Below, piece after piece: positions 38,648 through 64,000 of a stretch of 64,000 nucleotides of DNA. The position numbers were made by a program, and so were the translations under genes. Where the stretch lies: sequence record NC_070957.1, one strand, 5' to 3'. Each line of letters starts with the position of its first letter. The first letter of the stretch is position 1. Under the pieces are notes generated by a model. That model did no database searches. It saw only the letters and a program-made list of their open reading frames with translations, and was not told where the DNA came from.

Positions 38648-41600
38648 TTACTTTTTCTTTTTGCCTTTACCTTCGGGAGGAAGGTCAGACTCATCGAATG
38701 CACTCATTTCTGGTGCAATCTCTTCTTCCTCTACAACTACGTCTTCTTCAAGTTTCTTTTCATCACCTTCAATTACTTCAGGATCAGAACCTTGTTCAAC
38801 GTCGTTATCGAGTTGATCTTGATCTTCGATTACCGCTTCATCATCCGCAGGCGGAAGATCGTCAGGACCGAATGCCTCAAGATCTGATTCAGGTTCAGGA
38901 GTCACATCTTTCCCAAGATCGTCACCGGTTACCTCGGTTTCGTCATCGGGAATAGTGTCGACACCGGCGTCATCAGGAGGAAGGTCGAGTTCTGCCGATT
39001 GTGCCATCGGTTCAGCACCTGCTTCCGCACCAGCCTCATCACCACCTTCACTACCTACATCAGGTCCGGCAGGGAGATCGTCCATTGAGAACGCACTCAT
39101 GTCAGAACCGTCCGTGTCGGTAGCGCCTGTGTCCTCAGCACCGAAATCGGAACCACCGCCGAAATCTCCAGCACCACCATCGAATCCACCGCCAGGCTGT
39201 TCTTCCAGCATACCAGGGTTAGATGGCTCAGCACTTTCGTCCGGTTTCTCACCGTTGATCTCGTCGGACTTGGCCTTCAGTTTTTCCAGGAGCTTATTGG
39301 TCTTCTTATTACCGTTGACATAAGCTTCCAGGAACTTAATGGTATTGGTCTCGAGGTTGGTGATACTATCTACCATCGAGAAGATACCACCACCGTCACC
39401 GTCGTTGAGGACCTCTTCGAACGGCATCGGGATATTGAAACGCTGGAACGCATCAGCCAACATCGCTCCCTTAACCTGACTAATAATCAGATCAGGTTCA
39501 ACGTTGATTTCAGCAGCCAGTCGCTCAATAGCCTTGGCACCACCCATCAACTGTGTCCAACGCTCAACGAGTTTATCGATTGCCTCGATTTTGTCGTCGA
39601 TCTTGTTGAGGGTATCAGTGATAGCCGGTTTAGGAAGTTCCACATAGAAAGACTTGAGGAAGTCCAGGAAGACCATCTCAACCTTTTCTTCTTCAGTGAG
39701 TTTACCTTCCAGTTCGAGACCTTCCGCCTCAGCGATTTCTTCCAAGCTGTATTGAGAAGAAGTCTTCTCGTAAAGTTTGGCGTTTTCCTTAATGGTCTTA
39801 AGGAGATCAGTGACCAAAGGCTCGTTGCACATGATGTGCTTCCGCATGAAGTCGGAGAAGAACCGAGAGAACTTGTCAGACAGTTCGGCGGTTTGGTTAC
39901 GAAGCATTTCCTGCTCAGCCAAAGCCTCTACCTGGAAATCGTTACCTTCACCACTGTCATCCAACCAACTACGTTTCAGGTTAAAGTAACCAGAAATAAC
40001 GTTGAGCAGTTGCTCACGAGTACTAGGATCGATTGTCTTGAGTGGTTCACGTTCCATTTGGTGGGCGTTGATCTCGGGAGCGATTACCGAACGGTTTTCA
40101 CCAGCATCGACACGAATAGTCAACGACTGTTCTTTAAACCGATCCAACACCGCATCAATAGACACGTTGTTAAAACCGATAATGTCGTGCAGAGTCGGGT
40201 TGTTGGCAAACCACTCGTCACGAACCATCGCAACAAGGTTACGAGCATCAGGGTTCTGTTTCTCCAGAACAATAGAAAGTTCTGTGTGAGAAATAGAGTT
40301 CTCGATGTTGGCCAGGGCATCAGCAGTTTCCAAAACCGCAAGGCGGGTGATGTGGAGCTTAGCTTCTTCTACCAAAGAACGACCAGTACCAAGAGCGTTA
40401 AACTCAGTGGCAATGTAGGTCATGTATTCGGCAGGGACAAAGACACAACGAACACCTTGCTGACGGAAGGCACGACCCAAGAACAGTTTCTTGTTATGCT
40501 CGGTCAGTGAGATGGTAACTGATTTACGGAGATCACCGTTAATGAAACCTTCAGCCAGTTCCTTCTCAAGTGTTGCAGATGCAAACTCAACCATCCAGGA
40601 CATGTCGACCGCACAATCTCTGCCCTGAGCAACAGCCTTGATATGGGACGCCATTTCGTTGATGGAGCCGACCCCGTTCTTCAACACGGTTCCGCTTTGA
40701 GAACCTTGATAGAACTTCATATCCCCGACAGTACGGAGAAACTCACCAGTGTCCGGGTCAGTCAACAGAATGTAACCGAATGGGTTGCCGATGTCACCAT
40801 TGGCGTGAACAGGGATACATGCTTCACTGGGAACGTGGTAAGTGATACCGATACCTTTCCCGCTACCAGTGTAGAAACGACTCCTACGAACGCTCAGGGA
40901 CTCAGAATAACGATAGTTGCGCTTGGGATACAACTCAGCAATGATTTTGTTGCTATCCTCGATGCTGGCGATACCTACCTTGTTGTTATTCTGGTTCTTC
41001 TCTTTCTTGGCCTTAGCCAGCTGTTTCTTGCCAGTCTCAAAAACCTGACCCATCACAGTTCGTAATGTCTCGTTACCAGTGACAGAACGGAGACGTCTGG
41101 AGGTCAGCGTCTGACGAAGTTCAGCTGCACGCATCACAATCGGGTTATCAGTAAAGGTCCAGTTCAGTCCTTCTTCAACCAGGTTGTATTCACTACCAGC
41201 ACTGGCGTTCCCCGAAACACCCCAGAGACTTTCCATACCACCGGCATCAGCAAGTGCGTTGTTCGGCGTTTTGCGAATGTATCCCAGGTTCTTGGCTTTC
41301 TTAAAGCTACCATCGAAATGCTTTTCGAATATAGCTTTGCCCCGTTCAAAACCCTCGTTACCAGAAGTCTCGAGTGACATCTCGTAACCATTTATGAGGT
41401 GGTCCAAAACGCTGTGGGACATGTTCAAAAGAGCATAAGAACCTGATCGGAACATTACGTCTTTAATGATTTGAGCCAGGTCTTTCTCAAAGGGGTATTG
41501 TGTTGTGAAATACTTCTTTACTGACGAGATCAAGTTGTCGTGGAGTTCCACGTTCTTCATGTCGGTATTTTCAGTAAGGAAGTTCAATATGTTACGCTGA

Positions 41601-48005: not shown

Positions 48006-49238
48006 TTATTTCACCTTGAAATTGATGCCGTGGATCTTAAAGAAGAACCCTTTCACCAGAGTGCAGGGATTCCCTTGGTTGACATACATGGAGTTAACCT
48101 TATGACCGCCAAGTGTACCCGTCGTCTGGATCGGGTAAATCCTGTTGATCCTGAGGTCCACGTTTAAGATACGCTGCTTTATCCCGTAAGAACGCATATA
48201 CGGAACAGGGAACAGCCCGTTGTCGAGCACAATAGGATGCTGGAAGCGTTCCTCAGTGTGCATCGCACTGGGGTAGAGGAAAGTGGTCAAAGGGACCAAA
48301 TCCACTGCCAGTGTTGGGTTATCAATCAGCACGAGGAAGGAGTTGTGCATAGTCAGTGCTTCTTCCTTATACTGATCAAGTTTCGTCATATCCTTAAGTT
48401 CCGGAGTGACGGTGTAATTACTGAATACCTGATGATGACGCATCGCATCAAAACCATGAAGTCTTACTGAAAGATGATCAGAACTCACTCGGTCCAACAT
48501 GTCCTGGTCAACAAGCAGTTGGCCATTCACAACAATCCAAACGGTCCTGTTGTCAAGCTTGTTTGCTCCGACCTTGATCTTCCAACGTCGCTCACCATTA
48601 CTAGGCACGGTGGTCAACATATCCTTGGTGATCGGCAGTGTGGTGACTTTACCGAGCTTCTCAAAGGACATAGCGCCGATACGAAGATCCTGTTTCTTCT
48701 TGATGTAGTCATTCCCGGCACCAAGGAGATAGATCCCATCTTGACGTCCGATAGACCTGTAGAAGACACCGTTACATGTGAACAAAGCGTGATCAGATTG
48801 CTTGTTGTAATTGATCCCTGACTTGTACATGTAGTGCTTTACCAGGAGGTCAGGAGCCCCGTCTGACAAGAGGTCTGACTGTCTATCCTTTGTAAGGTTT
48901 ATATCACCTGGGAAGTGGAAATAGCCGTGAGTGAACAATCGTTCCAGTTTCACGTACTCGGCTTTATCTTCCGGGATGACATTGCTGGTTTTCAAAATGG
49001 TTGTTTTCTGAAGATCCAACCACTCTTGGATGACAAGATCAGAGTTAGCGATGAAGCTAGCGTGATGGTCTTCCAAAGTGATACAAATCTTCTCTTTGTA
49101 CATTTCATCATTGACGACTATGTAGAGCATGGAGAACAGTTTATCCAGGTCACCTAGTCGGTAATTAGAAATGTCTGCAAAGTGGTAACCAGGAATGTAT
49201 CCCTTATACCGCCCAACCGCATATAAGTATTTGTACAT
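48006..49238 (-). CDS. Probable virion structural protein, 410 aa
   Basis: ORF track; aromatic beta-rich; divergent from the fibre cluster. Confidence 0.55.
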   Translation of the reverse strand: MYKYLYAVGRYKGYIPGYHFADISNYRLGDLDKLFSMLYIVVNDEMYKEKICITLEDHHASFIANSDLVIQEWLDLQKTTILKTSNVIPEDKAEYVKLERLFTHGYFHFPGDINLTKDRQSDLLSDGAPDLLVKHYMYKSGINYNKQSDHALFTCNGVFYRSIGRQDGIYLLGAGNDYIKKKQDLRIGAMSFEKLGKVTTLPITKDMLTTVPSNGERRWKIKVGANKLDNRTVWIVVNGQLLVDQDMLDRVSSDHLSVRLHGFDAMRHHQVFSNYTVTPELKDMTKLDQYKEEALTMHNSFLVLIDNPTLAVDLVPLTTFLYPSAMHTEERFQHPIVLDNGLFPVPYMRSYGIKQRILNVDLRINRIYPIQTTGTLGGHKVNSMYVNQGNPCTLVKGFFFKIHGINFKVK

Positions 49239-50079: not shown

Positions 50080-53000
50080 ATGAACAGACCTGATTACCAA
50101 CTCTTGAAGTTGGACCTGTCCGGTGAATCTGTTTTTAACAGATTTGACCAGGAGTACGGAGAGAAACCAGATGGCGAGTACAATAACCTCGTTATCCCTC
50201 TTCAGGCTCCTTTCTATATCAGTTCCGTGAAGATGTATCATCCTGACGGTTCCCCGATGGATTATGGTGTTGACTACGATTTCTATGGGATGCTCGGTAA
50301 ACTCACTGAGTACACTGCCAAAGAAGTGGGTCTCTTCATCCGGATACTGAAACCAGAAATTAAAGGTTACTACATCGATTACCAGGCGGTGGGTAACTTC
50401 AACAAAATCACCGATGAAATTCTCAGTATGCTTCGCGTCATTGCTAATGATGACCGTCCAGTACACTGGGATAACATCGATAACAAACCTCTTTGGTTCG
50501 ATCCCGAGATCCACCTTCACGACTATACTTTCCATTTCTTTGGATTCGCAGACCTTGCTGCCGAACTGGCCAGAATCCAGCAACTCGGTGACATGTTCCA
50601 GAATAACGTCAAGATCACCATTGATGTTTTCAAAGAACGTATGGAGAGTTACATCGAGCAATACCAGAAAGTCCTTTACGACCTGATGGCCGCGCACGAT
50701 AAGAGTAAAGTGGATCCTCACGGTGTCTGGAAAACAGATATCGGTCTCGGTAAAGTGGATAACTTTAAGACAGCCACTCTCCAAGAGACATTGGACGTCG
50801 CTCGCTCCGATCTCCATATCACAGTTGGTAACGCCGCCCGCGCTATCGAACTTACTAAAGCGAATAACGAACGTCTGTACCCGGCTGGTACACTTCCATT
50901 ACTTCGTTATGGTAACGACAGTTACATCCCACCGAAGATCGATGGGTCATTTGAAGGGATGGGTGGGTACAATCTTCGCGGTTGTGTTGCACGGGAAAGT
51001 AACGGCTCCATTGTAGGACTCCAGCATCGCAATGATGGTGTGATCCGTGGACTCTATTACATCAAGTGTGATGACCCTTACGCCAAGAATCCCATCTGGA
51101 GTTTTACCGGTTATCGTTACATGCACCCCACTGCTATTGCCGATGGCGCTAACATCGACTCAGTCGTTAACGGCAGTGGGCGTTACGTAATGATGATAGG
51201 CGATGCCATTAAAGGCATTTGGTATTGGTGTGAGACTAACGGGACTCTGGATCCCTCCAAGCACGTCCTGAAACGCATCTCTGGTGATTTCATTAACTAT
51301 CCCTATGGGATGGGTCAGGATCTCACCATCCTTGCCGACAGCGATTACAGGGACCAGTGGTTCGTCATGGCGACAATGTCGCATGGTGCTGTTAAAGCAC
51401 TTCGTCCCAGTTACCCAACGGAAGGCCAGTCAGGGAGTGGAACCAGAACCGTAGAGGCGATCCGGATATTCACTTGTATTAACCAAGCTAATGCGCTGAA
51501 CATAGCGACGGTTGATTTTACCGAGCAAGATGGAACCACTCCCAAAGACAAAATTTGGATGCCCTACACAAGGACACTAAAGGTTGTCGATGGCGTTACC
51601 GTCGTAACCGGTTACGACGCCGAGTACACTCAGCCACTCAGAACGCTCTGGAACTATCGGAACATTCAGGCTATTTGTCGGAGAACCGGAACCCCTGGAG
51701 AGTACGCATTTTCGATCCAGAACTATTTGTTCATGATTCAATACGGAACCGAATATGCGAGTAGCAAGGTCCCGCTATGGAAAGGAACCATGAAACTTGA
51801 TAAGAATAACAACACTGTCAAGATCGTTCCAGGCCCTGGTGAGAAACGGTATCGCCTTGATCCAAGAAACCCTGCAATAGCCCAGCAAGAAGAATGGGAA
51901 CTCTATAAAGATTGGAAAACTATTAGTTACAGTTTCGTGACCGATGGGGACGGATTCGTGGAGTTCGACGAGACAGGTAATGCGATTTGGGTGTACCCTC
52001 TGGCCTCAGGGGTTCTTCCATGTGGTGTCCGGATCATGAAGCCCAGTAACCCCAAAACCCCGGAACGGGTGATCGGGAGACGGTCAGAATACGACTATGG
52101 TATTGATCGTGTCTCTGCGATAAGTGAGATTAACCCTGCTGGCCTGACGACCGGATTCTCCGAACCCATGAGTATTCTGGGTGATACCACGAAACCCCAA
52201 ACAGGTGTGGTACTTGCCCGTCAACTCTATGTGGATGGCAACTCACTTAAAACAGAATGGATCGCAAGACCGACTCCGTTCATGAATCCAGACTGGACGG
52301 GTAGAAATGACAACCTGTTCCAGATGACTGTTGGCGGCACCCAGGTGGCTGCGTACCCACTTACGCCGGAAGTTTATAAGTGTGATCTGGGACCCTACAA
52401 GTTCTGGTCTCTTCATGGATTCTCGATCGCCCCTCCAGGTAATGCAGTCAGAGAACGCTGGACACGTTTTGGTGGTGCCGATGGGGTGGGGAACATCAAT
52501 GGTGATTTTGGGGTTCCTGCTGACTTCTTATTCCCTCGTATTTCCAAAACAGAGATCGTCGGGAAGAAGATTGTAGTCACCCCGGTGGAAGTCTACAACC
52601 TGAGATCGATGCTTGAGACACAGATCAAGCCGTATCTCGATAGTAAAGGGATCAACACCGCCACCATCATGACGTCCTGGACACTTGCAACGGTTTATAA
52701 CCGTTTAGGTGAAGAAGCCGTGTTGCTCATGATAAGTGATCGTAATTTGGGTCCTGGCCAACAACATGTCCAAGCAACCCTATTCCTTGGTAAGTTGCGT
52801 GGTTTAGGAACGCCAACTATCAAAGATGGTTACACTTACTACGAAAATGCAACCCTGGATTTCGGTAACAAACATTACCGGACAGGGACAGTGGTTTCCA
52901 ACTCGATTTCAACAGTGATCGAGAACAGACACCCAACTGCATGGCGTACCGGATTCTGTATTACCGACATCAACACCGGGACTACTCCCGGAAGCAAGGA

Positions 53001-53721
53001 TCAAACCTGTGTTTACCTTCGGTCTTTGCATAAATATCAGGTCAATGGCGATACAGTTCCAGTCTCCCTGGTGATTGAATTTGATAACGCCTTCACCATA
53101 TCTCGTGTCGGATCCAAGTACGTTAGTAGTTCACCCTACTCTGAATCTGTCTGTTGTTCTCCAGGTAACACCATGGGGTACGTTTCCCCAGCAGATAGCG
53201 GATTAGCGAGAGGTGCGTGCTTTGTTGCTTCTGGGCTCTCAGTAACCACAAACAGGTATGACTGTCTGATTTCCAGTGATCCGGGTGGAGCCACCCCTAA
53301 GCGGCTAATTGTGAGTAATCTGCTGTCTTCAGCATACATTATTTACTTCCAAGAAGCTGACAACGTGTTGCTCGGTGGTCGTAAATACAAGATCGATGCC
53401 ACGTACGTAGATATTCGTGACTTCGACCCCAATCCGGCTAACAAGACGTTTTACGTATACCTGACCTTCAACAACGGTGCTCCGTCATACAGCATTGAAC
53501 GTTCTCCTCTCCCTGAGGGTTCGTTGATAGCGTGTGTCGCTGTCGTAACCGTCGGTTCTGATCGTATACAGACTGTAGTTCCCTACAACCGTTTCTTGAT
53601 GGACGGTGTGGAGATCAGTCAGAAACGTCGCGGTAGTTCCATCCTTGCTTCTACAGGTACTGTCTTCGAAGTAGGTTGGGTTGGCGGTATTTTCAAGAAC
53701 ACCGATTACATCCCTGAGTAA
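50080..53721 (+). CDS. Tail-fibre / receptor-binding family protein, 1213 aa
   Basis: PHGVWKTDIGLGKVDNFKTAT fibre-type motif; PPKIDGSFEGMGG; C-terminal module shared with 53789-57505. Confidence 0.7.
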   Translation: MNRPDYQLLKLDLSGESVFNRFDQEYGEKPDGEYNNLVIPLQAPFYISSVKMYHPDGSPMDYGVDYDFYGMLGKLTEYTAKEVGLFIRILKPEIKGYYIDYQAVGNFNKITDEILSMLRVIANDDRPVHWDNIDNKPLWFDPEIHLHDYTFHFFGFADLAAELARIQQLGDMFQNNVKITIDVFKERMESYIEQYQKVLYDLMAAHDKSKVDPHGVWKTDIGLGKVDNFKTATLQETLDVARSDLHITVGNAARAIELTKANNERLYPAGTLPLLRYGNDSYIPPKIDGSFEGMGGYNLRGCVARESNGSIVGLQHRNDGVIRGLYYIKCDDPYAKNPIWSFTGYRYMHPTAIADGANIDSVVNGSGRYVMMIGDAIKGIWYWCETNGTLDPSKHVLKRISGDFINYPYGMGQDLTILADSDYRDQWFVMATMSHGAVKALRPSYPTEGQSGSGTRTVEAIRIFTCINQANALNIATVDFTEQDGTTPKDKIWMPYTRTLKVVDGVTVVTGYDAEYTQPLRTLWNYRNIQAICRRTGTPGEYAFSIQNYLFMIQYGTEYASSKVPLWKGTMKLDKNNNTVKIVPGPGEKRYRLDPRNPAIAQQEEWELYKDWKTISYSFVTDGDGFVEFDETGNAIWVYPLASGVLPCGVRIMKPSNPKTPERVIGRRSEYDYGIDRVSAISEINPAGLTTGFSEPMSILGDTTKPQTGVVLARQLYVDGNSLKTEWIARPTPFMNPDWTGRNDNLFQMTVGGTQVAAYPLTPEVYKCDLGPYKFWSLHGFSIAPPGNAVRERWTRFGGADGVGNINGDFGVPADFLFPRISKTEIVGKKIVVTPVEVYNLRSMLETQIKPYLDSKGINTATIMTSWTLATVYNRLGEEAVLLMISDRNLGPGQQHVQATLFLGKLRGLGTPTIKDGYTYYENATLDFGNKHYRTGTVVSNSISTVIENRHPTAWRTGFCITDINTGTTPGSKDQTCVYLRSLHKYQVNGDTVPVSLVIEFDNAFTISRVGSKYVSSSPYSESVCCSPGNTMGYVSPADSGLARGACFVASGLSVTTNRYDCLISSDPGGATPKRLIVSNLLSSAYIIYFQEADNVLLGGRKYKIDATYVDIRDFDPNPANKTFYVYLTFNNGAPSYSIERSPLPEGSLIACVAVVTVGSDRIQTVVPYNRFLMDGVEISQKRRGSSILASTGTVFEVGWVGGIFKNTDYIPE

Positions 53722-53730
53722 AACCCAAGT

Positions 53731-53763
53731 TGAGAGTGCGATCTTTTGATCGCACTCTCACTT
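53731..53763 (+). terminator. Stem-loop / terminator
   Basis: TGAGAGTGCGATC-TTTT-GATCGCACTCTCA-CTTT, perfect 13-bp stem. Confidence 0.8.
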
Positions 53764-53788
53764 TACCCTTTATTGTCAAGAGGACATC

Positions 53789-56700
53789 ATGAAAGACATT
53801 CAGATTGTCAACATTGACTATTCAGCAGTAGACCCGAAATACCGTAGAAAAGAGAAGCACGTAATCGCAAAGATTCCTGCTCCCTGGTTAGTGCCTGATG
53901 AAGGTCCTTTCTACACTCAAGGTATTCGGTTGCTGAATGGTGGAACACCGCTCATTTACGAGAAAGATTTCGAGTACGCCACTCCGGCAGCTGATATCAC
54001 AGAACAACTTGGCCGTGATATTTATCACCACATCAAGTTGAAAGAACACATCCTCACAACAGCAACAGCTATCGATATCGAATACCAAACCGTTGGCGAC
54101 CCCATCATTGGTCGCAATAAACTGTTGCAACTTTTGGAAGACATGATCATCAAGGGCGAACCCATTGATATCACTACAAGTGTCATCGGCATGCCCGACA
54201 CTTTCTTCCCGTCCAAACACTCCATGGACGTTACCAAACCTGACGAAGTTGTGGGCTTTGGTAACCTTATCCAGTTGTTCAGTATTCTCGGATCACGTGT
54301 CGAAGCAGGTTCCGGTCAAATCAAGGAACTGCTGAATAAATTGAACGAGGACGCTTTCAAGAAACTGGACTACGTTCAGAACCTTCAGTGGAACGCCATC
54401 ATGCGGCACGCCACCAAGGATCGTAACCCGCACCTGATCAAAGCCCCTGATGTTCAGTTGAGTAACCTTTCCAACTTCGCAACAGCCAATCTTCAGCAAG
54501 AAGTAGAAGGTGTGCGTTCTGACCTTTATTCCACACCCCGTGGTCTGGGGGAGATCGTTAAAGAAGCCGAACCTGATGCTAGTGAGTTTGTTTTCCAAAA
54601 CGAACTTCCGTTCAGTTATTATGGATCGGGCATTTACCTCCCTCCTCCTATCTCAGGTTCATTCGAAGGTTTAGGTGGAGACCAGGAAACTGGATGTTTC
54701 ATCCAAGAAGGTAACGGTTGGCTGGTTGGACTCCTGCGAGCATTTGACGGAAAGGTTCGGAACCTCTTCTATATTTACGACACCCAACTGACAGACGACC
54801 CTCGTCAAGGGTTCTGGCGCCAGAGTTATGTTCAGTACAAACATCCCGCTATCACTGCGGCTGGTTGTGATGCCAACTACGTGATCTCTGGTTCTGGTGA
54901 CCGTGTTCTCATGCTTGGTGATAACACCAAGAGTCGGTGGTGGATCTGTGATCCTAACTCCACTCTTGACGCAGCGGCTCACAACTTTAAAGAAGTTGAT
55001 ACATCCGCCATGCACGCCCGTCCGAACTGGAGTTTCAATTTCTGGCACCAAGGTAACGTGTTCCGGGTTGGTGATTGGCTTTACTTTTTGATGTTCACTC
55101 CTGAGATAAACTTGTTCCCTGGCGACTATAAAGGGGCCGTCAGCGGTGACAATATGATCGGATGGTTATACAGGGCACCTGCCTCTGATCTCACCAATCC
55201 GGCAAAGACTAACATTAAGTTTGAACCTTGCACCATCAATTACGATAACCTCAGAAGAGAACGCCGTAACTCTCAAGCCGCCTTTTCTATGGACCGGTTC
55301 GAGGTTGATGGTAATAACTTGATTACCTCAGGTGGTGGGTGTCAGTACAGTATTCCAGTCAACTCATTTATGTCCCATCGACGTCGTAACGTCATCGTGG
55401 TCGAGAACCCCAACAATCCAAACCAAGCTAGAATTCGGTTTTACGCCTTGGTACGTCCTACCTACAACGATGGTGGTTTGACAGTACAACAATCCCAAAT
55501 GACGGTGGATTATCTTTTCGATAACAACACGCTGACTTTGGCACTGGATCCCAAGTGGAAGTACATGTACTATGACCTCCGGCAAAACTGGATAACCAAC
55601 CTTACCGAGGAAGAACTCCGGCGTCAGTGGGTTCCCTGGGGTGGTGGTGCAAAGGGGAACCTTCCTGGAACGGGTACTGCTATTCCAGTGTCTTATGTAC
55701 CAGGGTTTGGACACATAGGGATACTGACAGGGTCCGATGGTGGGATGCCCTACATCGTGTGTAAAGTTTTGAACAACCCATCAAGGGACCCGCGTCGTGA
55801 TTGGGAATACTTCGCTCAACCCAATTCGTGGAGGGATGCTTCGGGGCGAATGAACGATGGTAACCAGTACATCCAACCAGACACTCCGTTTGGCTTTACT
55901 TCGTTCCCTAGGTGGTACAGTGATCTTTACGATGTGAACGGTCAAATACTGACAACCCCCATCGAACTGTTCATTGCAGATAACCCAGGTGTTGATGGGC
56001 AGCACTACTACCGTGAAGTAGAACCAGGAACTGGGACACAATACATCCCCCGTCCAGAAGCCAAATTGATGGACGGTACTATTCCCTACGCACGGGAAAT
56101 GAATAGTAAGTTTGGACCAGTGACGAACCGACTCCCGTGTTCACTTGGCCGGGTGAACAATCCAAAGTCCAAAGACCAGTATTCCACCGAATACGGGATT
56201 TTCACTGTAACTTGGCCGAATTACCGAGTCGCCAAAACACCGTTGTTTTCACCGGTAGTTGTGAGTAAGGACACGTACGCTCCGCCCACTATGGATTCCG
56301 AAGGGAGTATTGTCATACCGTTGTTGTTGGATCACACCATCGTTAATGGTAAAATGACGTTAAGTCCGAATCCATCTAAGTCTGTACATATCCCCGCTTA
56401 TATTTGGCGTGACTGGATGCACAGATTGATTGGAGCAGAAATGGACAACGTCATCGACATTGTCGTTGACTTCTTCATTTCCCCCAAACAGGATGGTCTC
56501 GCCTATAAGCGTCATTCCTACGCGATGTTCACTTTCCACACCACCGATAATCCAAAAGCCATTAGACAGATTATATCCAAGTTTACTTGGGCTGTAAGAA
56601 GTTATAACTCTCAAGGTGTGAGGATAATGCAGGTGAGTTCTGAACAGTACCCGTTCGTCTCTTCTGTTGGTTCTCAACCATATTCACTCGCACCAGGTGT

Positions 56701-57505
56701 CGATAACACACTCATCGATGCAGGATGGAACGACGCCCAGTTCAACCCGAACGGAACTTGGAAAATTCTGAACGTCCCGTCACAACTTTCGACACCCAAC
56801 ATGCAAGTGTTGGAACACCGTGAGCTCGGTGAAGGAGTGTATGAGATTTTCGCGTACACTGGCTGGCGGATTTTCACGCAGAGCTATTCACGGATTTTCG
56901 GATTTAAGGACTATAACAATCCTCATAAACCCAAAGAGACGTTTGCATTTTCACCGTACACTGGTGCGTTCGTAAGTTACGCAACATACGGCGTCGCTAA
57001 CCCTGAACACGGGATGTGTACTGGTGAAAACTATCTCACGGTGGGCGGTGGTGCTGTCGATATGACCATCAGTGAGGTGGGTGCTAAGAAAGTAATGCGA
57101 GGTGCGACGTTCTCTGTGGGTAACTGGAGTGTGTTTATCGCAAGTGATATCGTGGTCTCTTTCGGTGGATACTCGATGACCGCAGTGAAACGCAACTTTG
57201 ATCTTCGGAACTTCACCAGTAAGTTTAGAAACAATACTTTCTACATCTATTGTGTGGCAAGAGGTTCCAAAGCTGAATACGAAGTATCTGGTATGCTTCG
57301 TTACCCACGTTCTGATTCGCTCTTGGTCGCCAAGATTATCACTGGTGATCTGGGTGTTGAAAGTATCGAACGTTATCAACCGTTTGCCATTGCTGGATTC
57401 CCGCTTACGCGAGTGAGGGATGCTGGTATCCCAGTTAGTTCTGGGTCCATCTTTGATGAGGGTACTTACTCCTTTATCAAGTATTCCGAACTTTACACTG
57501 ACTAA
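53789..57505 (+). CDS. Tail-fibre / receptor-binding family protein, 1238 aa (paralog of 50080-53721)
   Basis: NPHLIKAPDVQLSNLSNFATA; PPPISGSFEGLGG; shared C-terminal module (NTFYIY...YQPFAIAG...IPVSSG). Confidence 0.7.
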   Translation: MKDIQIVNIDYSAVDPKYRRKEKHVIAKIPAPWLVPDEGPFYTQGIRLLNGGTPLIYEKDFEYATPAADITEQLGRDIYHHIKLKEHILTTATAIDIEYQTVGDPIIGRNKLLQLLEDMIIKGEPIDITTSVIGMPDTFFPSKHSMDVTKPDEVVGFGNLIQLFSILGSRVEAGSGQIKELLNKLNEDAFKKLDYVQNLQWNAIMRHATKDRNPHLIKAPDVQLSNLSNFATANLQQEVEGVRSDLYSTPRGLGEIVKEAEPDASEFVFQNELPFSYYGSGIYLPPPISGSFEGLGGDQETGCFIQEGNGWLVGLLRAFDGKVRNLFYIYDTQLTDDPRQGFWRQSYVQYKHPAITAAGCDANYVISGSGDRVLMLGDNTKSRWWICDPNSTLDAAAHNFKEVDTSAMHARPNWSFNFWHQGNVFRVGDWLYFLMFTPEINLFPGDYKGAVSGDNMIGWLYRAPASDLTNPAKTNIKFEPCTINYDNLRRERRNSQAAFSMDRFEVDGNNLITSGGGCQYSIPVNSFMSHRRRNVIVVENPNNPNQARIRFYALVRPTYNDGGLTVQQSQMTVDYLFDNNTLTLALDPKWKYMYYDLRQNWITNLTEEELRRQWVPWGGGAKGNLPGTGTAIPVSYVPGFGHIGILTGSDGGMPYIVCKVLNNPSRDPRRDWEYFAQPNSWRDASGRMNDGNQYIQPDTPFGFTSFPRWYSDLYDVNGQILTTPIELFIADNPGVDGQHYYREVEPGTGTQYIPRPEAKLMDGTIPYAREMNSKFGPVTNRLPCSLGRVNNPKSKDQYSTEYGIFTVTWPNYRVAKTPLFSPVVVSKDTYAPPTMDSEGSIVIPLLLDHTIVNGKMTLSPNPSKSVHIPAYIWRDWMHRLIGAEMDNVIDIVVDFFISPKQDGLAYKRHSYAMFTFHTTDNPKAIRQIISKFTWAVRSYNSQGVRIMQVSSEQYPFVSSVGSQPYSLAPGVDNTLIDAGWNDAQFNPNGTWKILNVPSQLSTPNMQVLEHRELGEGVYEIFAYTGWRIFTQSYSRIFGFKDYNNPHKPKETFAFSPYTGAFVSYATYGVANPEHGMCTGENYLTVGGGAVDMTISEVGAKKVMRGATFSVGNWSVFIASDIVVSFGGYSMTAVKRNFDLRNFTSKFRNNTFYIYCVARGSKAEYEVSGMLRYPRSDSLLVAKIITGDLGVESIERYQPFAIAGFPLTRVRDAGIPVSSGSIFDEGTYSFIKYSELYTD

Positions 57506-57509
57506 CTAT

Positions 57510-57532
57510 GTGGGGAGGGAACTCCCCACTTT
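57510..57532 (+). terminator. Stem-loop / weak terminator
   Basis: GTGGGGAG-GGAA-CTCCCCAC-TTT. Confidence 0.65.
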
Positions 57533-57547
57533 AATAGAGAGAGTCGT

Positions 57548-60500
57548 ATGTACATAGATAAGGATAAACCTCACCAGGAACCTGAACCCAGGGATAATCC
57601 TGTTGGGGTTGTGCTGAATGAGTTCATCAAGAACGACCGTAAAGCACAAGAAGTAACAGGTGATGTTGCAGACACTATCCTTGAAATAGTGGAAGCCAAA
57701 ACAGACATCGAGAAACGCATTGACGAATTCTCCAAAGATGTCACAGATAAAATCGCCGAACATACCAGTCGTGTTGGTGCCATCCATGGTGAAACCAAGG
57801 TCACCGTTGGGCTCGGTAACAAAGATAACTTCAGGATGGGGACCATCGCAGAACACATTGCTGGTGCTCCCGATAACGTTTATGCTCATCCTGCTGGTTT
57901 GAAAGAACTGGTACAATCCAGAGTGAAGGTCAACCCGGACAACTACATCCCGGCAGGGATTATCCCCTACGCCCATGGCGGGATGATTGGTGAAGTTCCC
58001 CAGTACGAGTACGATACCAGCATTGGTGAAATGCTCCAAAGTGCACTTGATCCCAAAGACTACATGTTTGAGACTCCTTGGGAATTCAGCACTAGTTCTG
58101 GATCACTCGTTTTCCCATCACTCAACCACTCTCCTACCCACGGGATCTATACCCAACTGGGTGCGGTCACACCTACCCTTAACTCTCCTCACGGCGGGAC
58201 CAAGATTCGTGTCTATAACAAGACGCTGGATGCTCGTAAAACTCGCCCTAGCAACATCAGGGCATGGAGTAGCAACGGGCTAGGAGATATGGCTCAAGTC
58301 GACTCCTCTTTGATGGACCGGTACTCAGTGTTCCTTAAAGAAGGTTCTGAGTGGGTGGTGCGTTCTTTTAATAAGAACATTATCCCGGTGGACTATTTCA
58401 AACTGGGTGCATTTTATCCTGGTAAGCCCTCAGGCATGTTCCAGTTCTCCGAAGGACTCATGTATAACTTGGTCCATAACCAAAGTTACAGCAATCCCAT
58501 CGGTGAAAGTTCTCCTGAAATCCACAGTCGGTACGACTATCTGACTTTCGGGTTCCGCATCAATGATTACAATGCCGTTAATGGCGGTGATCAAGGTGCA
58601 GAACAAGAAGGGACATTACTCGGACGGATTGGTAGTTTCACCGGGACAGTTCCCGCACACGGTAAACTTAAGTTCACCAATGATGCTGCGAACAAACAAG
58701 GCTCTATTGTAATCAAACTCAGTTCACTGGTTCAAATGCCTGCTGGTGTCCAACCTGAACTCGTCAAGAATATGTCGATTAAAGAGTTTGGTAACAAGAT
58801 CGGATTTGCTTGGAACAACCGTATGGCGTTTCATAGCTACATTCGTCTCCCTATGGGTTGGTGGAACAAGAACCGCACTAAGTACTGGCATGCTTGGCTC
58901 GACTTCGAGATTATCGATGTCCCTGGGACCACAACGGTCGCATCTCAGTTGAGAATCAATACCCTCGACCCGGCTTGGAATAATCCTCGTCAGGTGATGA
59001 ACGCTAACTACGATTTGACTGGCGAAGGTCTCTTCAAGGAATACGCTCCAGATGTACGGGAGAACCCGACACATCCGCTGGCGCTTGGTGGTATCTTCGA
59101 ATCACTGGGTGGTCACGTCAAAACCCACACCATGTACGGTCGTCAGTACGTAAGTTATGTTCACCACGGTTATGGCGATGTATTGTCCATGATCCAAGGT
59201 GGTTCGGGTAAATTCCCGGCAGCGACTGAAGAGGAACATAGTGTTCGTTCCACGCTGAACAGTAACGGCCTGTTTGGAGACCATCTCCGGCACATCCCTG
59301 TCAATGTAAACCGGCTCCAAGGGGATAATGCAGGTGAGGTGACGTACCTCACTCAAGTGCGAGATAGCCGTGAACGTTATCGCTGGGCCAAAGTCGTTAT
59401 AGATGGACAAGAAGAAGTTCAACAGAATCGGGCTTTCGGGAACTACCTCGCTCCCACTGTTCAAAGCTTTGACTGGATGGATCGTTCATTTGAACCGCCC
59501 AAACCGTTCCTCATCTCCAATGATGACTTCCAGGACGAGATGGGCATCAGCGGTATGGTGTTTACATCAGAAAACAGTTTCATCGGGTTTAGTCAGTACG
59601 AACTGACAGAAGCGACCGATAACAGTTTCCTGACGTACAAGGATCAGATCCGTCTTGATTCTAAAATCGAGTCTTGGGTGGCTAAGAACACCGGTGGTTA
59701 TACCAATCCGGACATGCTGTTCTTTTATTTCCGTAACACAATTTTCTTTGTGTCTCGTTGTACTGTTCCTGGGGAATATCCTGCTGACGGTAAGGACGCA
59801 ACCTGCGGGTACTTTGCCGACTGTCATGTTGTCGGGGATATCTTTACGGGTAAACGTGTAACCACGGTGGGAGACATTGGTGGGTCTGTTACCATGTCCA
59901 AGTTCAACCTGAACAAGAAATCCACGCTCGAGATCGATGATAACCACGTTTTCGGTATAGACCAATTAACGGGTCGTGATGTTTACATCATGATGACCAA
60001 CCATGATAACACAACTCAGGCTCAGAGCCATGACGTCATGTTGAATATGGGTCCGTTCAAGAACTTCTATATCGAGATGAAACTGATCCGTAATGGTGAT
60101 GGCACATTCGTGTTCCGACCCAAACCGGAAGCTGTGGATCCTATCTTCCCTTATGTGGAAGGTGTCGGGTACCAGATCGATTACGACGAACATATTCAGT
60201 ACGGTAAGAAACTTCCTCATCGTCTCCATATCAACTACCAATCACCGGTAATGTTGAAGAAAGGCATGTGGAGTTTCCGCAAGACCCCTAACAACTTTGG
60301 TGTCTTCACTCGACGTCACGGGTTCTTTGTGACAACGGGTTGTATGATGTCGAACTACTTCGGTGTCGATGTTTACCCTATGGGTTCTGTCCTGACTGTC
60401 AGTGGTAAAAACACCGTGGTTGATAAACCCGTTTCGCTGAAGATGAAGGCAAAGGGTTACAACTCCGAACTGTATGTGCGTCTGGAAGGTGATGGTCCGA

Positions 60501-63500
60501 AGCTGTACGGCACCGACATGAACCCTGACGGGTATGAGTTGGAACCCCACATTGGTGCAGCACCTGCTGGTTGGCAGTACGGAACTTCCTTCTTCTATTA
60601 CGACCCCAATGGGTGGAGGAATAGTTTCCTTCCGGTGATAGATGGAAACCGTATGAGCTGGTACGACTACGGTAGTACGTTCCCGGCGTTCCTCGGTCAA
60701 CCAGGAAGTAAAGTTCCTACCAACCGTTACTTCATCGGAGCCAATCCGACGATAATGACTTGGGATACTTCCAAAGGCAGGAAAATACCGACTATCAGTA
60801 CGCTCCCCATGAACGTAATGGTTAACGGTGTTGATTACTTCACTAGTGGTACAGAGTTTGTCATCCCGGCAGAATACACAGGGATTGTCAATATCAAGAT
60901 GTTCCACGCCAACACGTTGAAGTGGGCACCTGGTCTGGTCAGTATCTCTGATATCGGTAACAAGGTAACTGTTCTGGACTTCTCTAATTCGGAAGGGTTC
61001 AGTATATCAGCACCTCTCCCGAGACGAATCAAAACCCTGAACCAAACCTTCAAGGGTGCGAAGGCCGCCGCTTACCCAGGGATTGAGAACTGGGATGTCA
61101 CACACATCCAGGAGTTCGTTGAGACTTTCCGTGGTGCACCTTTGTTCAACCAACCCTTGAACTGGGTTTGTACAGAAGGTCGGATGTTTAACGGGATGTT
61201 CCAAGATTGTCCGGTGTTCAACCAAGACATCTCTGGATTCAAACCGGTTAACGGCACGCTGTTTTACAACATGCTCCGTGACACTGGTGCGTTTAACAAG
61301 CCGATCAACTGGAAGTTGAACAGTGTGCAATCCATGAAGGGGTTCCTGAGGGGTGCGAAAGCATTCAACTCCTCTGTGACTGGTATTCAAATCAAGTCAC
61401 TTGCGGGACTCCAAGAGTTCTTCATGGAAACCAGCGTGTATAACCAAACCTTGGATGGTTGGGATTGGAGTCTGGTATCTTCCGTTCAGGATATGTTCAA
61501 CGGTGCGAAAGCATTCAACAAGGACATTAACCAGAACGCTCCGCAGTGTCACACAGTTACACAGATGTTCCGGTATAACCAAGTCTTCAACAGCAAGGTT
61601 AATATCCAGCTCCCGATCTGTGTTAACTTCCATCGGATGTTTGAACAAACAAAGGTGTTCAACCAGAAGTTGCCTAACTGGAGTTTCTCGCCTGGAACAA
61701 GTCTGACAGAGATGTTCAGAGGTGCCGAAGCGTACAACCAGTCTATGGACCACTGGATGATGGAGCGAGTTGTCTCTGTTCGCGGAATGTTCCGTGATGC
61801 AGTTGCGTTCAATACTCCGGTCAAGACTTGGAAGTTCTACAAGCTGAGGGATTGTGCTTATCTGTTTGCAGCACCAAACTTCAACGCTGATGTAAACGAC
61901 ATCCAATGGCCTAACGACAAGACCCTGGACATCGACGCCGGTGGTATTTTCTACGGTGCATTGGTATTCAACAAACCACTGAATAAGTGGAATGTAAGTG
62001 CGTTTGGTCAGTTCAACGGCATGTTCAACAACGCTCCTGTTTTTAATCAGGATATCTCCATGTGGGATACCAGCAACTGTTGGCGAATGGCGAATCTGTT
62101 CCTGAGAGCGACAGCGTTTAGCGGGGACATTTCCAAGTGGGACGTCAGTAAGGTAATTGATTTCTCGCAGTTCGCTGCCAATGCAATCAATTTCAAATCT
62201 GACCTTTCCAAATGGAAGGTGGGTGCTTGTCTGAACTTCAATCGGATGTTCCGTCACGCTCTGGCATTCAACTCACCGATAGGTGATTGGGATGTGAGCA
62301 ATGGCGTTGACTTCGAAAGCATGTTCGATGCGTACCACATAACGGAGACGGTCACCGAACCCAATTACGCCATGACCTTTAACCAGGACATCAGTAAGTG
62401 GAATGTAGGTAAGGGTGTCAAGTTCAATGCGATGTTCCGTAAGTGTGAGTCCTTTAATCAGGATATCTCCAACTGGAACATGGGGAATGCAGAAGAAACT
62501 GGTGCGATGTTCCAGAACTGTTACCTCTTCAACGCAGACCTCTCCAAGTGGAACCCGGGTCGTTTGATGAACATCAAGTACATGTTCTACAAGGCCAGTT
62601 CTTTCAACAGAAGTATCGGTCATTGGGACGTGAGTCGTTGTACCGAGTTCACCCAGGTATTCCTTGGTGCAACCGAGTTCAACCAAAACCTTAATAACTG
62701 GAACGTTTCTAACGGTACAGACTTTAAGGGGATGTTTGAGAGCGCTACCAAGTTCAACGGGACTATCGGTGGATGGGACGTTCGGAAAGGTGTTACTTTC
62801 AACCGGATGTTCTGGCATTGTTTCGCATTGGATCAGGATATCTCAGCTTGGAGAGTCGACTCTGGTCAAAACTTCCAGGACATGTTCCGTGATTGTTACT
62901 ACTACAACTCTCCGATGAACGATTGGGGGATGGGTAATGCGATTACTTGTACTGACATGTTCACAGGCTGTCTGACGTTTAACCAACCGTTGGATAAGTG
63001 GAACACTAGCCGTGTCACCTCGATGCAGGCGATGTTCTACAAGACACCGAAGTTCAACCAGAACCTCAATAACTGGACGACATCCAGTGTGCTGAACATG
63101 GCCAACATGTTCAAAGGTGCGAGTGTGTACAACCAACCCATGGATAAATGGGATGTGAGTAAAGTCACCGACTTTACCAACATGTTCGGTCCTATCGCCG
63201 ATACTGATCCGTACGCATTTAACCAACCTCTCGCTACTTGGAATACCGCTTCTGCGGTAAACATGACTGCGATGTTCAGGATGTGTTGGAACTTCAACCA
63301 GAAACTCACTGGTTGGAATACATCCAATGTTACCAGCATGGCTGTAATGTTCTATCGTTGTGAACGTCTGGTAGACCCTGATGTTAACGGTTGGAACGTC
63401 GGTAAAGTTTGGTCCTTCGAATCCATGTTCCAAGGTTGTTCGCTGTTTAACGGATCCCTGTTCGCCTGGCGTCCGGTGGAAGCACGGAATATGGCATCCA

Positions 63501-64000
63501 TGTTCCAGGGCGCGACCAAGTTCAATTCCAACATTAGTAGTTGGAACATGACCAAGGTCGGTACGTTTGCCAGCATGTTCCAGAGTGCTGAAGCGTTCAA
63601 CCAAGACATCTCCGGTTGGAATACTAGCGCGGCCACTGACATGTCCAACATGTTCTATGGTGCGGTAGTTTTCAACGCACCCATTGGTAGTTGGAACACT
63701 GGTAACGTAAATAACATGTCTGGTATGTTCCATGAAGCCAGGATCTTTAACCAACCAATCGGTACCTGGAACGTTGGTAAAGTCCAGACAATGGAATCTA
63801 TGTTCGAGAACGCCAAGCGATTTAACCAACCTCTCGCTAATTGGAATGTTAGTGCGGTAACCACCATGTCTCATATGTTCCATGGAGCTGAAAAGTTCAA
63901 TGGGTTGTTGACTAACTGGAGCACTGCATCGGTAACCGACATTAGCTGGATGTTTAAAGTCGCCAACGACTTTAACCAACCTATAGGGCACTTCAACACC
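57548..64000 (+). CDS. Giant tail-fibre-like protein, at least 2151 aa, runs off the window end; C-terminal DUF285/PARCEL repeat array
   Basis: ATG 57548 (MYIDKDKPHQEP...); IHGETKVTVGLGNKDNFRMGT fibre motif; same frame hand-checked at 57548-57860, 60302-61200 and 63962-64000; absence from the ORF track fits having no stop in the window. Confidence 0.85.
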   Translation, partial: MYIDKDKPHQEPEPRDNPVGVVLNEFIKNDRKAQEVTGDVADTILEIVEAKTDIEKRIDEFSKDVTDKIAEHTSRVGAIHGETKVTVGLGNKDNFRMGTIAEHIAGAPDNVYAHPAGLKELVQSRVKVNPDNYIPAGIIPYAHGGMIGEVPQYEYDTSIGEMLQSALDPKDYMFETPWEFSTSSGSLVFPSLNHSPTHGIYTQLGAVTPTLNSPHGGTKIRVYNKTLDARKTRPSNIRAWSSNGLGDMAQVDSSLMDRYSVFLKEGSEWVVRSFNKNIIPVDYFKLGAFYPGKPSGMFQFSEGLMYNLVHNQSYSNPIGESSPEIHSRYDYLTFGFRINDYNAVNGGDQGAEQEGTLLGRIGSFTGTVPAHGKLKFTNDAANKQGSIVIKLSSLVQMPAGVQPELVKNMSIKEFGNKIGFAWNNRMAFHSYIRLPMGWWNKNRTKYWHAWLDFEIIDVPGTTTVASQLRINTLDPAWNNPRQVMNANYDLTGEGLFKEYAPDVRENPTHPLALGGIFESLGGHVKTHTMYGRQYVSYVHHGYGDVLSMIQGGSGKFPAATEEEHSVRSTLNSNGLFGDHLRHIPVNVNRLQGDNAGEVTYLTQVRDSRERYRWAKVVIDGQEEVQQNRAFGNYLAPTVQSFDWMDRSFEPPKPFLISNDDFQDEMGISGMVFTSENSFIGFSQYELTEATDNSFLTYKDQIRLDSKIESWVAKNTGGYTNPDMLFFYFRNTIFFVSRCTVPGEYPADGKDATCGYFADCHVVGDIFTGKRVTTVGDIGGSVTMSKFNLNKKSTLEIDDNHVFGIDQLTGRDVYIMMTNHDNTTQAQSHDVMLNMGPFKNFYIEMKLIRNGDGTFVFRPKPEAVDPIFPYVEGVGYQIDYDEHIQYGKKLPHRLHINYQSPVMLKKGMWSFRKTPNNFGVFTRRHGFFVTTGCMMSNYFGVDVYPMGSVLTVSGKNTVVDKPVSLKMKAKGYNSELYVRLEGDGPKLYGTDMNPDGYELEPHIGAAPAGWQYGTSFFYYDPNGWRNSFLPVIDGNRMSWYDYGSTFPAFLGQPGSKVPTNRYFIGANPTIMTWDTSKGRKIPTISTLPMNVMVNGVDYFTSGTEFVIPAEYTGIVNIKMFHANTLKWAPGLVSISDIGNKVTVLDFSNSEGFSISAPLPRRIKTLNQTFKGAKAAAYPGIENWDVTHIQEFVETFRGAPLFNQPLNWVCTEGRMFNGMFQDCPVFNQDISGFKPVNGTLFYNMLRDTGAFNKPINWKLNSVQSMKGFLRGAKAFNSSVTGIQIKSLAGLQEFFMETSVYNQTLDGWDWSLVSSVQDMFNGAKAFNKDINQNAPQCHTVTQMFRYNQVFNSKVNIQLPICVNFHRMFEQTKVFNQKLPNWSFSPGTSLTEMFRGAEAYNQSMDHWMMERVVSVRGMFRDAVAFNTPVKTWKFYKLRDCAYLFAAPNFNADVNDIQWPNDKTLDIDAGGIFYGALVFNKPLNKWNVSAFGQFNGMFNNAPVFNQDISMWDTSNCWRMANLFLRATAFSGDISKWDVSKVIDFSQFAANAINFKSDLSKWKVGACLNFNRMFRHALAFNSPIGDWDVSNGVDFESMFDAYHITETVTEPNYAMTFNQDISKWNVGKGVKFNAMFRKCESFNQDISNWNMGNAEETGAMFQNCYLFNADLSKWNPGRLMNIKYMFYKASSFNRSIGHWDVSRCTEFTQVFLGATEFNQNLNNWNVSNGTDFKGMFESATKFNGTIGGWDVRKGVTFNRMFWHCFALDQDISAWRVDSGQNFQDMFRDCYYYNSPMNDWGMGNAITCTDMFTGCLTFNQPLDKWNTSRVTSMQAMFYKTPKFNQNLNNWTTSSVLNMANMFKGASVYNQPMDKWDVSKVTDFTNMFGPIADTDPYAFNQPLATWNTASAVNMTAMFRMCWNFNQKLTGWNTSNVTSMAVMFYRCERLVDPDVNGWNVGKVWSFESMFQGCSLFNGSLFAWRPVEARNMASMFQGATKFNSNISSWNMTKVGTFASMFQSAEAFNQDISGWNTSAATDMSNMFYGAVVFNAPIGSWNTGNVNNMSGMFHEARIFNQPIGTWNVGKVQTMESMFENAKRFNQPLANWNVSAVTTMSHMFHGAEKFNGLLTNWSTASVTDISWMFKVANDFNQPIGHFNT
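61020..64000 (+). repeat. Coding tandem array of at least 39 units of ~75 nt (25 aa), DUF285 / PARCEL / TIGR02167 type
   Basis: Consensus W(N/D)xSxVxxxxxMFxxAxxFNQx(I/L)xx; Trp codons spaced exactly 75 nt over most of 61988-63917. Confidence 0.9.

Follow-up and report, generated by a model that had tools for sequence, protein, structure and literature searches.

The 64,000-nucleotide stretch of Aeromonas phage D3 analyzed here (record NC_070957.1, hereafter the window) ends within a very large gene, D3_0120, which encodes a protein of four parts: a ~110-amino-acid (aa) module shared with the neighboring fiber genes, a ~900-aa beta-rich body, a ~120-aa adapter, and ~57 units of the PARCEL/DUF285 repeat followed by a cap. 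This body-plus-array architecture is conserved across a wide chimallivirus clade, and the D3_0120 gene is a mosaic of two exchangeable cassettes, with the junction near units 7-9. By analogy with the baseplate fibers of phage phiKZ, D3_0120 is probably a virion fiber that binds the host with both its body and its solenoid. More tentatively, chimalliviruses may have a distinct and widely conserved class of baseplate fibers with the PARCEL solenoid as distal host-binding arm, and both cassettes would be exchanged independently to change recognition.

Positions 57548..64000 of the window correspond to bases 119548-126000 of MN102098.2 at 100% identity (megablast). A taxonomy lookup places phage D3 in the genus Ludhianavirus of the family Chimalliviridae, which comprises the phiKZ-like, nucleus-forming jumbo phages, and the term "phiKZ-like" used in the first-pass annotation (a reading of the sequence by a model, made prior to any database search) is therefore correct at the family level. 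The same annotation had reported the reading frame as absent from the gene track; the gene is already annotated as D3_0120 in MN102098.2, and its absence from that track is no property of the sequence. As had been predicted, the frame beginning at 57548 continues to the window end through 2151 codons with zero in-frame stops. The full gene comprises 8031 nt and encodes 2676 aa; its stop codon, the only one in the full translation and in terminal position, lies 1578 nt past the window end. A purine-rich run is located 6-12 nt 5' of the ATG. The open reading frame (ORF) and its parts within the window are as follows, with the methods that delineate them, including hidden Markov models (HMMs) and AlphaFold2 (AF2) structure prediction.

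57548..64000, plus strand: D3_0120 ORF, truncated at the window end (open frame; annotated coding sequence 119548-127578)
57647..57973, plus strand: shared fiber-paralog module, aa 34-142, predicted as a long helix with the HG..VGLG..DNF segment after it (hhalign, BLASTP, AF2)
57998..60733, plus strand: beta-rich body, aa ~151-1062, the counterpart of a free-standing tail protein of the PS1 type (AF2, Foldseek, PS1 alignment)
60734..61090, plus strand: junction or adapter between body and array, aa 1063-1181 (absent from array-less orthologs; AF2)
61091..64000, plus strand: window part of the PARCEL/DUF285 array, aa 1182-2151 (HMMs, unit profile, AF2)

The assignment of the array to DUF285 is borne out by every family model proposed for it. 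PF03382 matches the window part at E=2e-278 (905.7 bits) and the full protein at E=0 (1461.6 bits, in 19 stretches), in both cases against a cut-off of 25, and TIGR02167 matches D3_0120 at 113.7 bits against a cut-off of 30. The model NF045896 also scores above its cut-off (525 bits vs. 500), and the best NCBIfam match of the array is a Mycoplasma lipoprotein family. Using a unit profile built from 32 gapless in-register units, the full array was found to extend over aa ~1182-2657 with a period of 25 aa and ~57 units, 3 of which are broken by short insertions; a tail, or cap, of ~20-28 aa follows the last unit. The window itself holds 38 complete units and the start of a 39th, in agreement with the initial count of at least 39 repeats. 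The motif positions read from the sequence are likewise real (column shares: W1 0.91, M12 0.81, F13 0.97, A/C16 0.93, F19 0.81, and N20 0.97), and most of the remaining columns have a share of <=0.5, which fits an amphipathic unit.

The AF2 model of aa 1101-2151 (mean predicted local distance difference test, pLDDT, 88.2) places one short strand every ~25 residues, and its best neighbors in a Foldseek search of the PDB are all leucine-rich repeat (LRR) solenoids: TLR13 (probability 0.96), CroV588, a giant-virus circular LRR (0.89), and then TLR3/8/9 and SHOC2. These solenoids have one short beta-strand per ~25-residue turn, as does the predicted array, but no sequence similarity to it, and the resemblance is at the level of fold class, with template modeling scores (TM-scores) of 0.1-0.24 and an unverified curvature. 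The two predictions support the suggestion that an LRR-like solenoid ends this member of the fiber cluster, and the array is accordingly predicted to form one. The coding DNA of the array is also distinctive, with 45 inverted 7-mer pairs within 75 nt compared to 21.7 +/- 5.8 in codon-order shuffles (z=4.0). None of the 200 shuffles reached the observed count, the test being a crude one and the effect modest, and the body DNA has no excess of such pairs in the same test. Dyad symmetry, or palindromic character, of the coding DNA is a hallmark of PARCEL sequences (PMC2996958).

Existing labels for the gene vary. The GenBank product is "hypothetical protein," with a note citing similarity to a BspA-family LRR surface protein of Aeromonas phage LAh10, and UniProt names the protein a BspA-family LRR surface protein. 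No BspA-type LRR family model distinct from DUF285 matched in a Pfam scan of D3_0120, which returned PF03382 only, and the "BspA family" label appears to be a naming convention for DUF285 proteins. The GenBank note "putative chitinase" is unsupported, as the body matches no Pfam family even at E<=10; there are zero glycoside-hydrolase family matches in D3_0120, and the nearest glycosidase signal for the body is a weak fold-class resemblance to propeller sialidases and GH43 in the Foldseek PDB search.

At its N-proximal end, D3_0120 is tied to the two genes immediately upstream, D3_0118 and D3_0119. The HG..K..VGLG..DNF motif that the first-pass annotation had noticed in all three is recovered by BLASTP (E=1e-7 to D3_0118 and 2e-4 to D3_0119), and profile-profile comparison of the module with a seven-member alignment of the D3_0118/0119 family yields a probability of 97.1% at E=7e-11 (hhalign). 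Within the window, the module is restricted to these three genes; a 53-residue stretch of it also matches aa 193-244 of phiKZ gp131 (BLASTP E=1e-4). The module occupies aa 34-142 in D3_0120 and aa ~170-277 in D3_0118/0119, and this earlier start means that D3_0120 lacks the first ~135 residues of its paralogs. AF2 predicts helices at residues 18-33 and 40-73 of this N-terminus, at low pLDDT. Outside aa 34-142, neither BLASTP nor hhalign (profile-sequence and profile-profile) detected any likeness between D3_0120 and the paralogs, and the claimed resemblance of window positions 60350-60730 to their C-terminal module was not recovered by any of these comparisons.

Likeness between the bodies of these proteins is found instead at the level of fold. 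The AF2 model of aa 1-1181, built with a 27-sequence alignment (mean pLDDT 78.6; predicted TM-score 0.70), contains ~80 strands from aa ~150 onward, with pLDDT mostly 75-94. A Foldseek search of the PDB with the body returned multi-propeller proteins (DDB1, EMC1, DPP8/9, semaphorins, and sialidases) at low TM-scores, which therefore indicate the fold class only. In BFVD, the body matches its own orthologs as well as chimallivirus proteins of 1150-1250 aa that are labeled "virion structural" or "minor tail," among them the protein immediately upstream of the ortholog in Aeromonas phage PS1; the non-ortholog matches have a probability of 1.0 over ~1100-1300 columns at 10-12% identity. The whole body thus resembles the D3_0118/0119 paralog class in fold and not in sequence, and on these models it looks like a member of that class. 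Around the adapter, low-confidence loops (residues 1020-1064) give way to a confident beta segment from residue 1068, and the adapter is also confident at the start of the second model (aa 1101-2151). When the PDB was searched by sequence, none of the queries (array, body, the two paralogs, and family profile) had a meaningful match, and no atomic model of the phiKZ fibers was matched. No signal peptide, lipobox, hydrophobic segment, or membrane segment was identified in D3_0120 (maximum Kyte-Doolittle hydropathy 0.88 in the first 75 aa and 0.92 anywhere), and there is therefore no sign of export or membrane anchoring. Membrane targeting by a lipoprotein or signal sequence is common in bacterial PARCEL members, and is neither universal nor family-defining.

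The genomic context of D3_0120 is that of a fiber cluster, of which the window holds two further large paralogs, with a gp130 homolog just upstream of the cluster.

48006..49238, minus strand: D3_0116, homolog of phiKZ gp130 (BLASTP E=6e-16)
50080..53721, plus strand: D3_0118, upstream fiber paralog of 1213 aa (N-terminus homologous to that of phiKZ gp131; BLASTP to gp131 aa 21-347, E=5e-11)
53789..57505, plus strand: D3_0119, upstream fiber paralog of 1238 aa (LAh10 ortholog labeled minor tail protein)

In D3, the gp130 homolog (D3_0116, minus strand) is followed on the plus strand by D3_0117-0120, which encode a small protein, both ~1200-aa paralogs, and the giant protein; a baseplate assembly gene in convergent orientation and SbcC come next. 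This order is identical in Pseudomonas phage OBP, LAh10, and PS1. D3_0116 and D3_0118 have the orientation and adjacency of gp130 and gp131 in phiKZ, and D3_0118 was found by tblastn in 224 phage records across the Chimalliviridae. D3_0120 is the third and largest member of this baseplate-fiber paralog cluster adjoining the gp130 homolog. In phiKZ, the structural atlas (2026) describes twelve peripheral fibers, the bases of which are hetero-hexamers of gp131-paralog N-terminal domains with a six-helix bundle, docked beneath the baseplate-periphery protein gp130, and a contact with the host has been proposed for the distally located gp131 propeller (PMC13250141). The D3 cluster resembles phiKZ gp131-gp135 in being a set of paralogs beside a gp130 homolog that have a common N-terminal region and diverge downstream (PMC13250141). 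D3_0120 itself carries an H..K..VGL..N segment like that of gp131, and the bodies of both look beta-propeller-like. The phiKZ paralogs differ in their size (110-771 aa) and in having no PARCEL repeats, and D3_0120 differs from gp131 in that the gp131-like N-terminal domain proper is missing, whereas D3_0118 has that domain.

The fusion of this body to a PARCEL array is widespread. Full-length orthologs of the body, at 34-54% identity, were identified by tblastn in Aeromonas phages (D6, D9, LAh10, ZPAH34, CF8, AerS_266, and AhC3_1), in OBP, and in phages of Kosakonia, Shewanella, Erwinia, Klebsiella, Pantoea, Edwardsiella, and Serratia, and a tblastn search with the array located arrays directly abutting the body in GenBank phages from six or more host genera. 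Orthologs with ~1-57 units occupy the corresponding slot in OBP, N1M2, AH04, pEt-SU, Kc263, LAh10, D6, and D9. The corresponding protein family, phrog_17273 (members: OBP gp145, LAh10_51, the D6/D9 orthologs, N1M2, AH04, pEt-SU, Kc263, Yubaba/Sureiya, SXP01, and Survivor), shares with D3_0120 the syntenic slot, a body 34-54% identical over all ~1180 aa, and the abutting array, and differs in unit number (~57 in D3 vs. ~14-31 in the OBP-like group, 44 in LAh10, and 33 in D9). Its profile covers aa 1-1351 of D3_0120 and has the length of OBP_145 (1713 aa). In a database of 5.8 billion proteins, PF03382 is present in each of the 27 body homologs that reach 1183 aa or more; their arrays begin at aa ~1170-1250 and leave ~28 aa at the C-terminus. 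D3_0120 is the longest protein found (the next, all metagenomic, are of 2650, 2624, and 2530 aa) and has the longest array, and no relative of its body variant in the searched databases exceeds 54% identity. The array had been called an unusual host-recognition module for a phage of this kind; the same fusion is common in its relatives, which lessens the novelty, as that annotation itself had foreseen. PARCEL sequences are also found in phages generally: 109 records match the array at E<1e-10 (tblastn), including cyanophages, Lak phages, Sphingomonas phage PAU, Listeria phages, and Vibrio jumbo phages.

Since the length limit of >=1183 aa made this first homolog search blind to array-less forms, it was repeated with the body alone. 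Eight clusters of 1171-1173-aa proteins without a Pfam domain were recovered, corresponding to gp126 of PS1, a 1174-aa protein called "tail protein" by RefSeq and located in the same slot between the fiber paralogs and the baseplate assembly gene. PS1 gp126 aligns to aa 1-1062 of D3_0120 at 35-37% identity and ends at the equivalent of aa ~1062. These PS1-like proteins of 1171-1174 aa differ from D3_0120 in having no adapter, PARCEL units, or cap, and no PARCEL unit was identified in any frame of the PS1 locus. Because the body stands alone in PS1-like phages, the array behaves as an add-on module.

A neighbor-joining, midpoint-rooted tree of the bodies has three deep groups: an OBP-like group with ~14-31 units, a PS1-like group with none, and an Aeromonas group with ~1 to 59 units by span; arrays of at least 40 units occur only in the immediate subclade of D3. 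A tree of this kind cannot separate a single gain of the array from a single loss. The orthologs of CF8 (P0010, 1306 aa) and ZPAH34 (P0011, 1309 aa) have about one detectable PARCEL unit and a short C-terminal tail, and their nesting among array-bearing relatives suggests that the array of this lineage was secondarily reduced.

Comparison among near-identical genomes further indicates how the gene is assembled. The backbones of D3, D6, D9, and LAh10 are 90-98% identical at the nucleotide level on either side of the fiber cluster, and between these flanks lie an island of divergence and, near its downstream end, a shift in identity.

51575..61544, plus strand: island divergent from LAh10, D6, and D9, with <=70% nucleotide identity or none detectable (blastn of D3 vs. 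LAh10; megablast coverage gaps)
61541..61747, plus strand: approximate cassette breakpoint, aa ~1332-1400, units 7-9 (identity shifts in D3/LAh10 and LAh10/D9)

The island spans the second half of D3_0118, all of D3_0119, and D3_0120 to aa ~1332. Between D3 and LAh10, the giant proteins are ~54% identical over aa 1-1370 and 96-99% identical over aa 1400-2000 and 2420-2676; a ~365-aa block of D3 (~14-15 units) is missing from LAh10, and its closest counterparts, at 54-58% identity, are in metagenomic relatives with long arrays. Between LAh10 and D9 the pattern is reversed, with the body and proximal units 96-100% identical and the distal array only 20-64% identical, and in two metagenomic relatives the array type of D3 (77-88%) is joined to a body of a third type (51% identical to that of D3). 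These opposed patterns delineate two independently assorting cassettes, one comprised of the body with about eight proximal units and the other of the distal array with its cap. Independent exchange of gene parts in near-identical genomes is the usual pattern of host-recognition genes, and the exchange of both halves speaks against the array being just a passive spacer. The upstream paralogs (window 51575-57547) lie in the same ~10-kb island, and, compared with the other members of its genus, D3 appears to have had its entire fiber cluster replaced in one piece.

The proposal that an ancestral fiber was extended with a captured solenoid holds in part. The array-less body of PS1 supports an add-on module, while the distribution, GC content, and unit divergence of the array speak against a capture that is recent or unusual. 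The array has a GC content of 0.473, compared to 0.479 for the window and genome, and no compositional sign of horizontal transfer was identified by this measure. Blocks of units are mutually ~30-35% identical, and self-similarity of the DNA is almost nil, by which a recent expansion through tandem slippage was rejected. Together, the matching GC content and diverged units indicate that the array is old and each unit distinct, and that it is the product of neither recent expansion nor recent import. That D3 or its genus alone recently captured the array horizontally from a bacterium could be suggested by the patchy distribution of PARCEL, which has been attributed to horizontal transfer (PMC2996958), and by the Mycoplasma lipoprotein family as best NCBIfam match. 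We regard such a capture as highly improbable, given that the fusion occurs in phages of Pseudomonas, Klebsiella, Erwinia, Edwardsiella, Kosakonia, Serratia, Shewanella, and Pantoea with bodies 34-37% identical to that of D3, that the start of the array is constant and a ~28-aa C-terminal tail is present in every homolog, that the GC content of the array equals that of the genome, and that the units are old and diverged.

For D3_0120 as a virion fiber, the shared module (aa 34-142) would bring the protein into a hetero-oligomeric fiber base with D3_0118 and D3_0119 at the baseplate periphery, as for the gp131 paralogs of phiKZ, and the body and ~57-turn solenoid would project outward from the baseplate. 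LRRs typically rise ~4.8 Å per unit, and provided that the rise per unit is similar here, the contour of the solenoid would be very roughly 25-30 nm. The variable surfaces of the body and solenoid could then bind the Aeromonas envelope, with cassette exchange as a natural source of variation in recognition. Such a host-binding role is plausible and fits the cassette mosaicism, and a place in the virion is supported by the fiber-cluster context, with D3_0116 as gp130 homolog and D3_0118 as gp131 homolog, and by the synteny in OBP, LAh10, and PS1. Purified particles of AaV, an algal giant virus, contain two DUF285 proteins (PMC7507832), which also counts in favor of a place in the virion. Several points weigh on the other side. 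The match of D3_0120 to gp131 is short and weak (E=1e-4), and its mode of attachment is uncertain, as it has no counterpart to the ~135 residues with which the paralogs begin and which are homologous to the gp131 N-terminal domain. The papers on N1M2, AerS_266, Kc263, and ZPAH34 contain no virion proteomics covering an ortholog. OBP_145 is labeled "hypothetical protein," while OBP_141-144 are putative virion structural proteins. The TM-scores of the fold matches are low (0.1-0.35) and support the fold class only, PDB sequence and profile searches with the array and the family profile found no solved PARCEL structure, and we know of no ligand for any PARCEL protein.

Some of the same observations could be accommodated if D3_0120 were a virion fiber in which the solenoid is mainly structural, as a rigid spacer or ruler or as a low-specificity sticky arm that makes a reversible first contact, and receptor specificity resided in the propeller-like body. 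Array-less orthologs in the same slot imply that the body is enough for the core role, unit number varies ~50-fold among orthologs, and the distal arrays of D3 and LAh10 are 96-99% identical despite bodies of ~54% identity; in phiKZ, moreover, it is the gp131 propeller that is proposed to bind the host (PMC13250141). We consider a mainly structural solenoid unlikely, however, as the distal array itself has been swapped between LAh10 and D9 (bodies 96-100% identical, arrays 20-64%), which is hard to explain for a mere spacer, and as the units have diverged individually and have not been homogenized, which suggests a specific surface. A role outside the virion, in which the protein is made during infection and acts in or on the cell (e.g., at the envelope), with its fiber-like module an evolutionary leftover, seems quite improbable. 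In its favor, OBP_145 lacks the virion-structural label of its four upstream neighbors, D3_0120 is without the gp131-like N-terminal domain of its paralogs, and the bacterial PARCEL proteins are cell-surface proteins (PMC2996958); yet D3_0120 has no signal peptide or membrane segment, the gene is flanked by the fiber paralogs and the baseplate assembly gene in all of the relatives examined, the fold of the body is that of virion structural and minor tail proteins, and RefSeq calls the PS1 ortholog a tail protein. We therefore favor a virion fiber that binds the host with body and solenoid together, which, if located on the virion as proposed, would represent a new class of appendage on the recently solved phiKZ-type baseplate. 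If the solenoid is indeed the distal host-binding arm of such fibers, it would provide the first functional and structural role for DUF285/PARCEL.

Parts of this system are already known: the gene and its domain are annotated, PARCEL ORFs in jumbo phages have been published, and the architecture is common in relatives. The bacterial PARCEL/DUF285 proteins, such as the Mycoplasma Mbov_0838 family and the Listeria 26-residue-repeat lipoproteins, have the same 25-residue amphipathic repeat and HMM families and, like D3_0120, an excess of short inverted repeats in their coding DNA (PMC2996958). D3_0120 differs from them in its lack of a lipobox, signal peptide, or membrane segment, in its phage tail-protein body, and in having far more units than is typical. 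A giant PARCEL ORF was published in 2020 from the Vibrio jumbo phage vB_VhaM_pir03 (ORF200, "putative PARCEL," 19,254 bp; PMC7765460). It is several times longer than D3_0120 and has no reported attachment module (PMC7765460), and the pir03 record is not among the matches to the D3 body. We could not find the clade-wide fusion of tail protein and PARCEL array, the 0-to-57 range of units, or the two-cassette mosaic described elsewhere. As PARCEL/DUF285 is widespread in bacteria, algae, giant viruses, and many phages, this ortholog family, with its tail-protein tether, 0 to ~57 units, and cassette swapping, represents a clean natural system for its study.

Several minor features were observed in and around the cluster. 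LAh10_53 (L005:22506-24986) is also labeled BspA; its ortholog in D3, D3_0122 (L001:23650-26130), lies outside the window, has weak, below-cut-off Pfam matches to SMC_N and ABC_tran, and is called SbcC in D3, OBP, and PS1. D3_0122 was rejected as a DUF285/BspA protein, being SbcC/SMC-like with no DUF285, and the BspA label on LAh10_53 looks erroneous and may have been transferred from the adjoining gene. Two stretches of ~280-300 nt (window ~40433-40736 and L001 ~23950-24227) match Aeromonas phage AP1 (MT713136) at 95-98% identity, while the rest of the region does not match AP1, which holds up to three such places; the matches may mark small mobile or recombined segments that are shared. Each of the two intergenic gaps in the fiber cluster contains a short GC-rich hairpin, one with a 13-bp stem between D3_0118 and D3_0119 (window 53731-53760), and the other a GGGGAG...CTCCCC stem right after the D3_0119 stop (window ~57510-57530). 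These hairpins may be signals for transcript processing or attenuation. Between the convergent D3_0120 and D3_0121, ~1.6 kb past the window (L001:22597-22628), a GC-rich perfect hairpin with a 14-bp stem and T-runs on both strands looks like a bidirectional intrinsic terminator.

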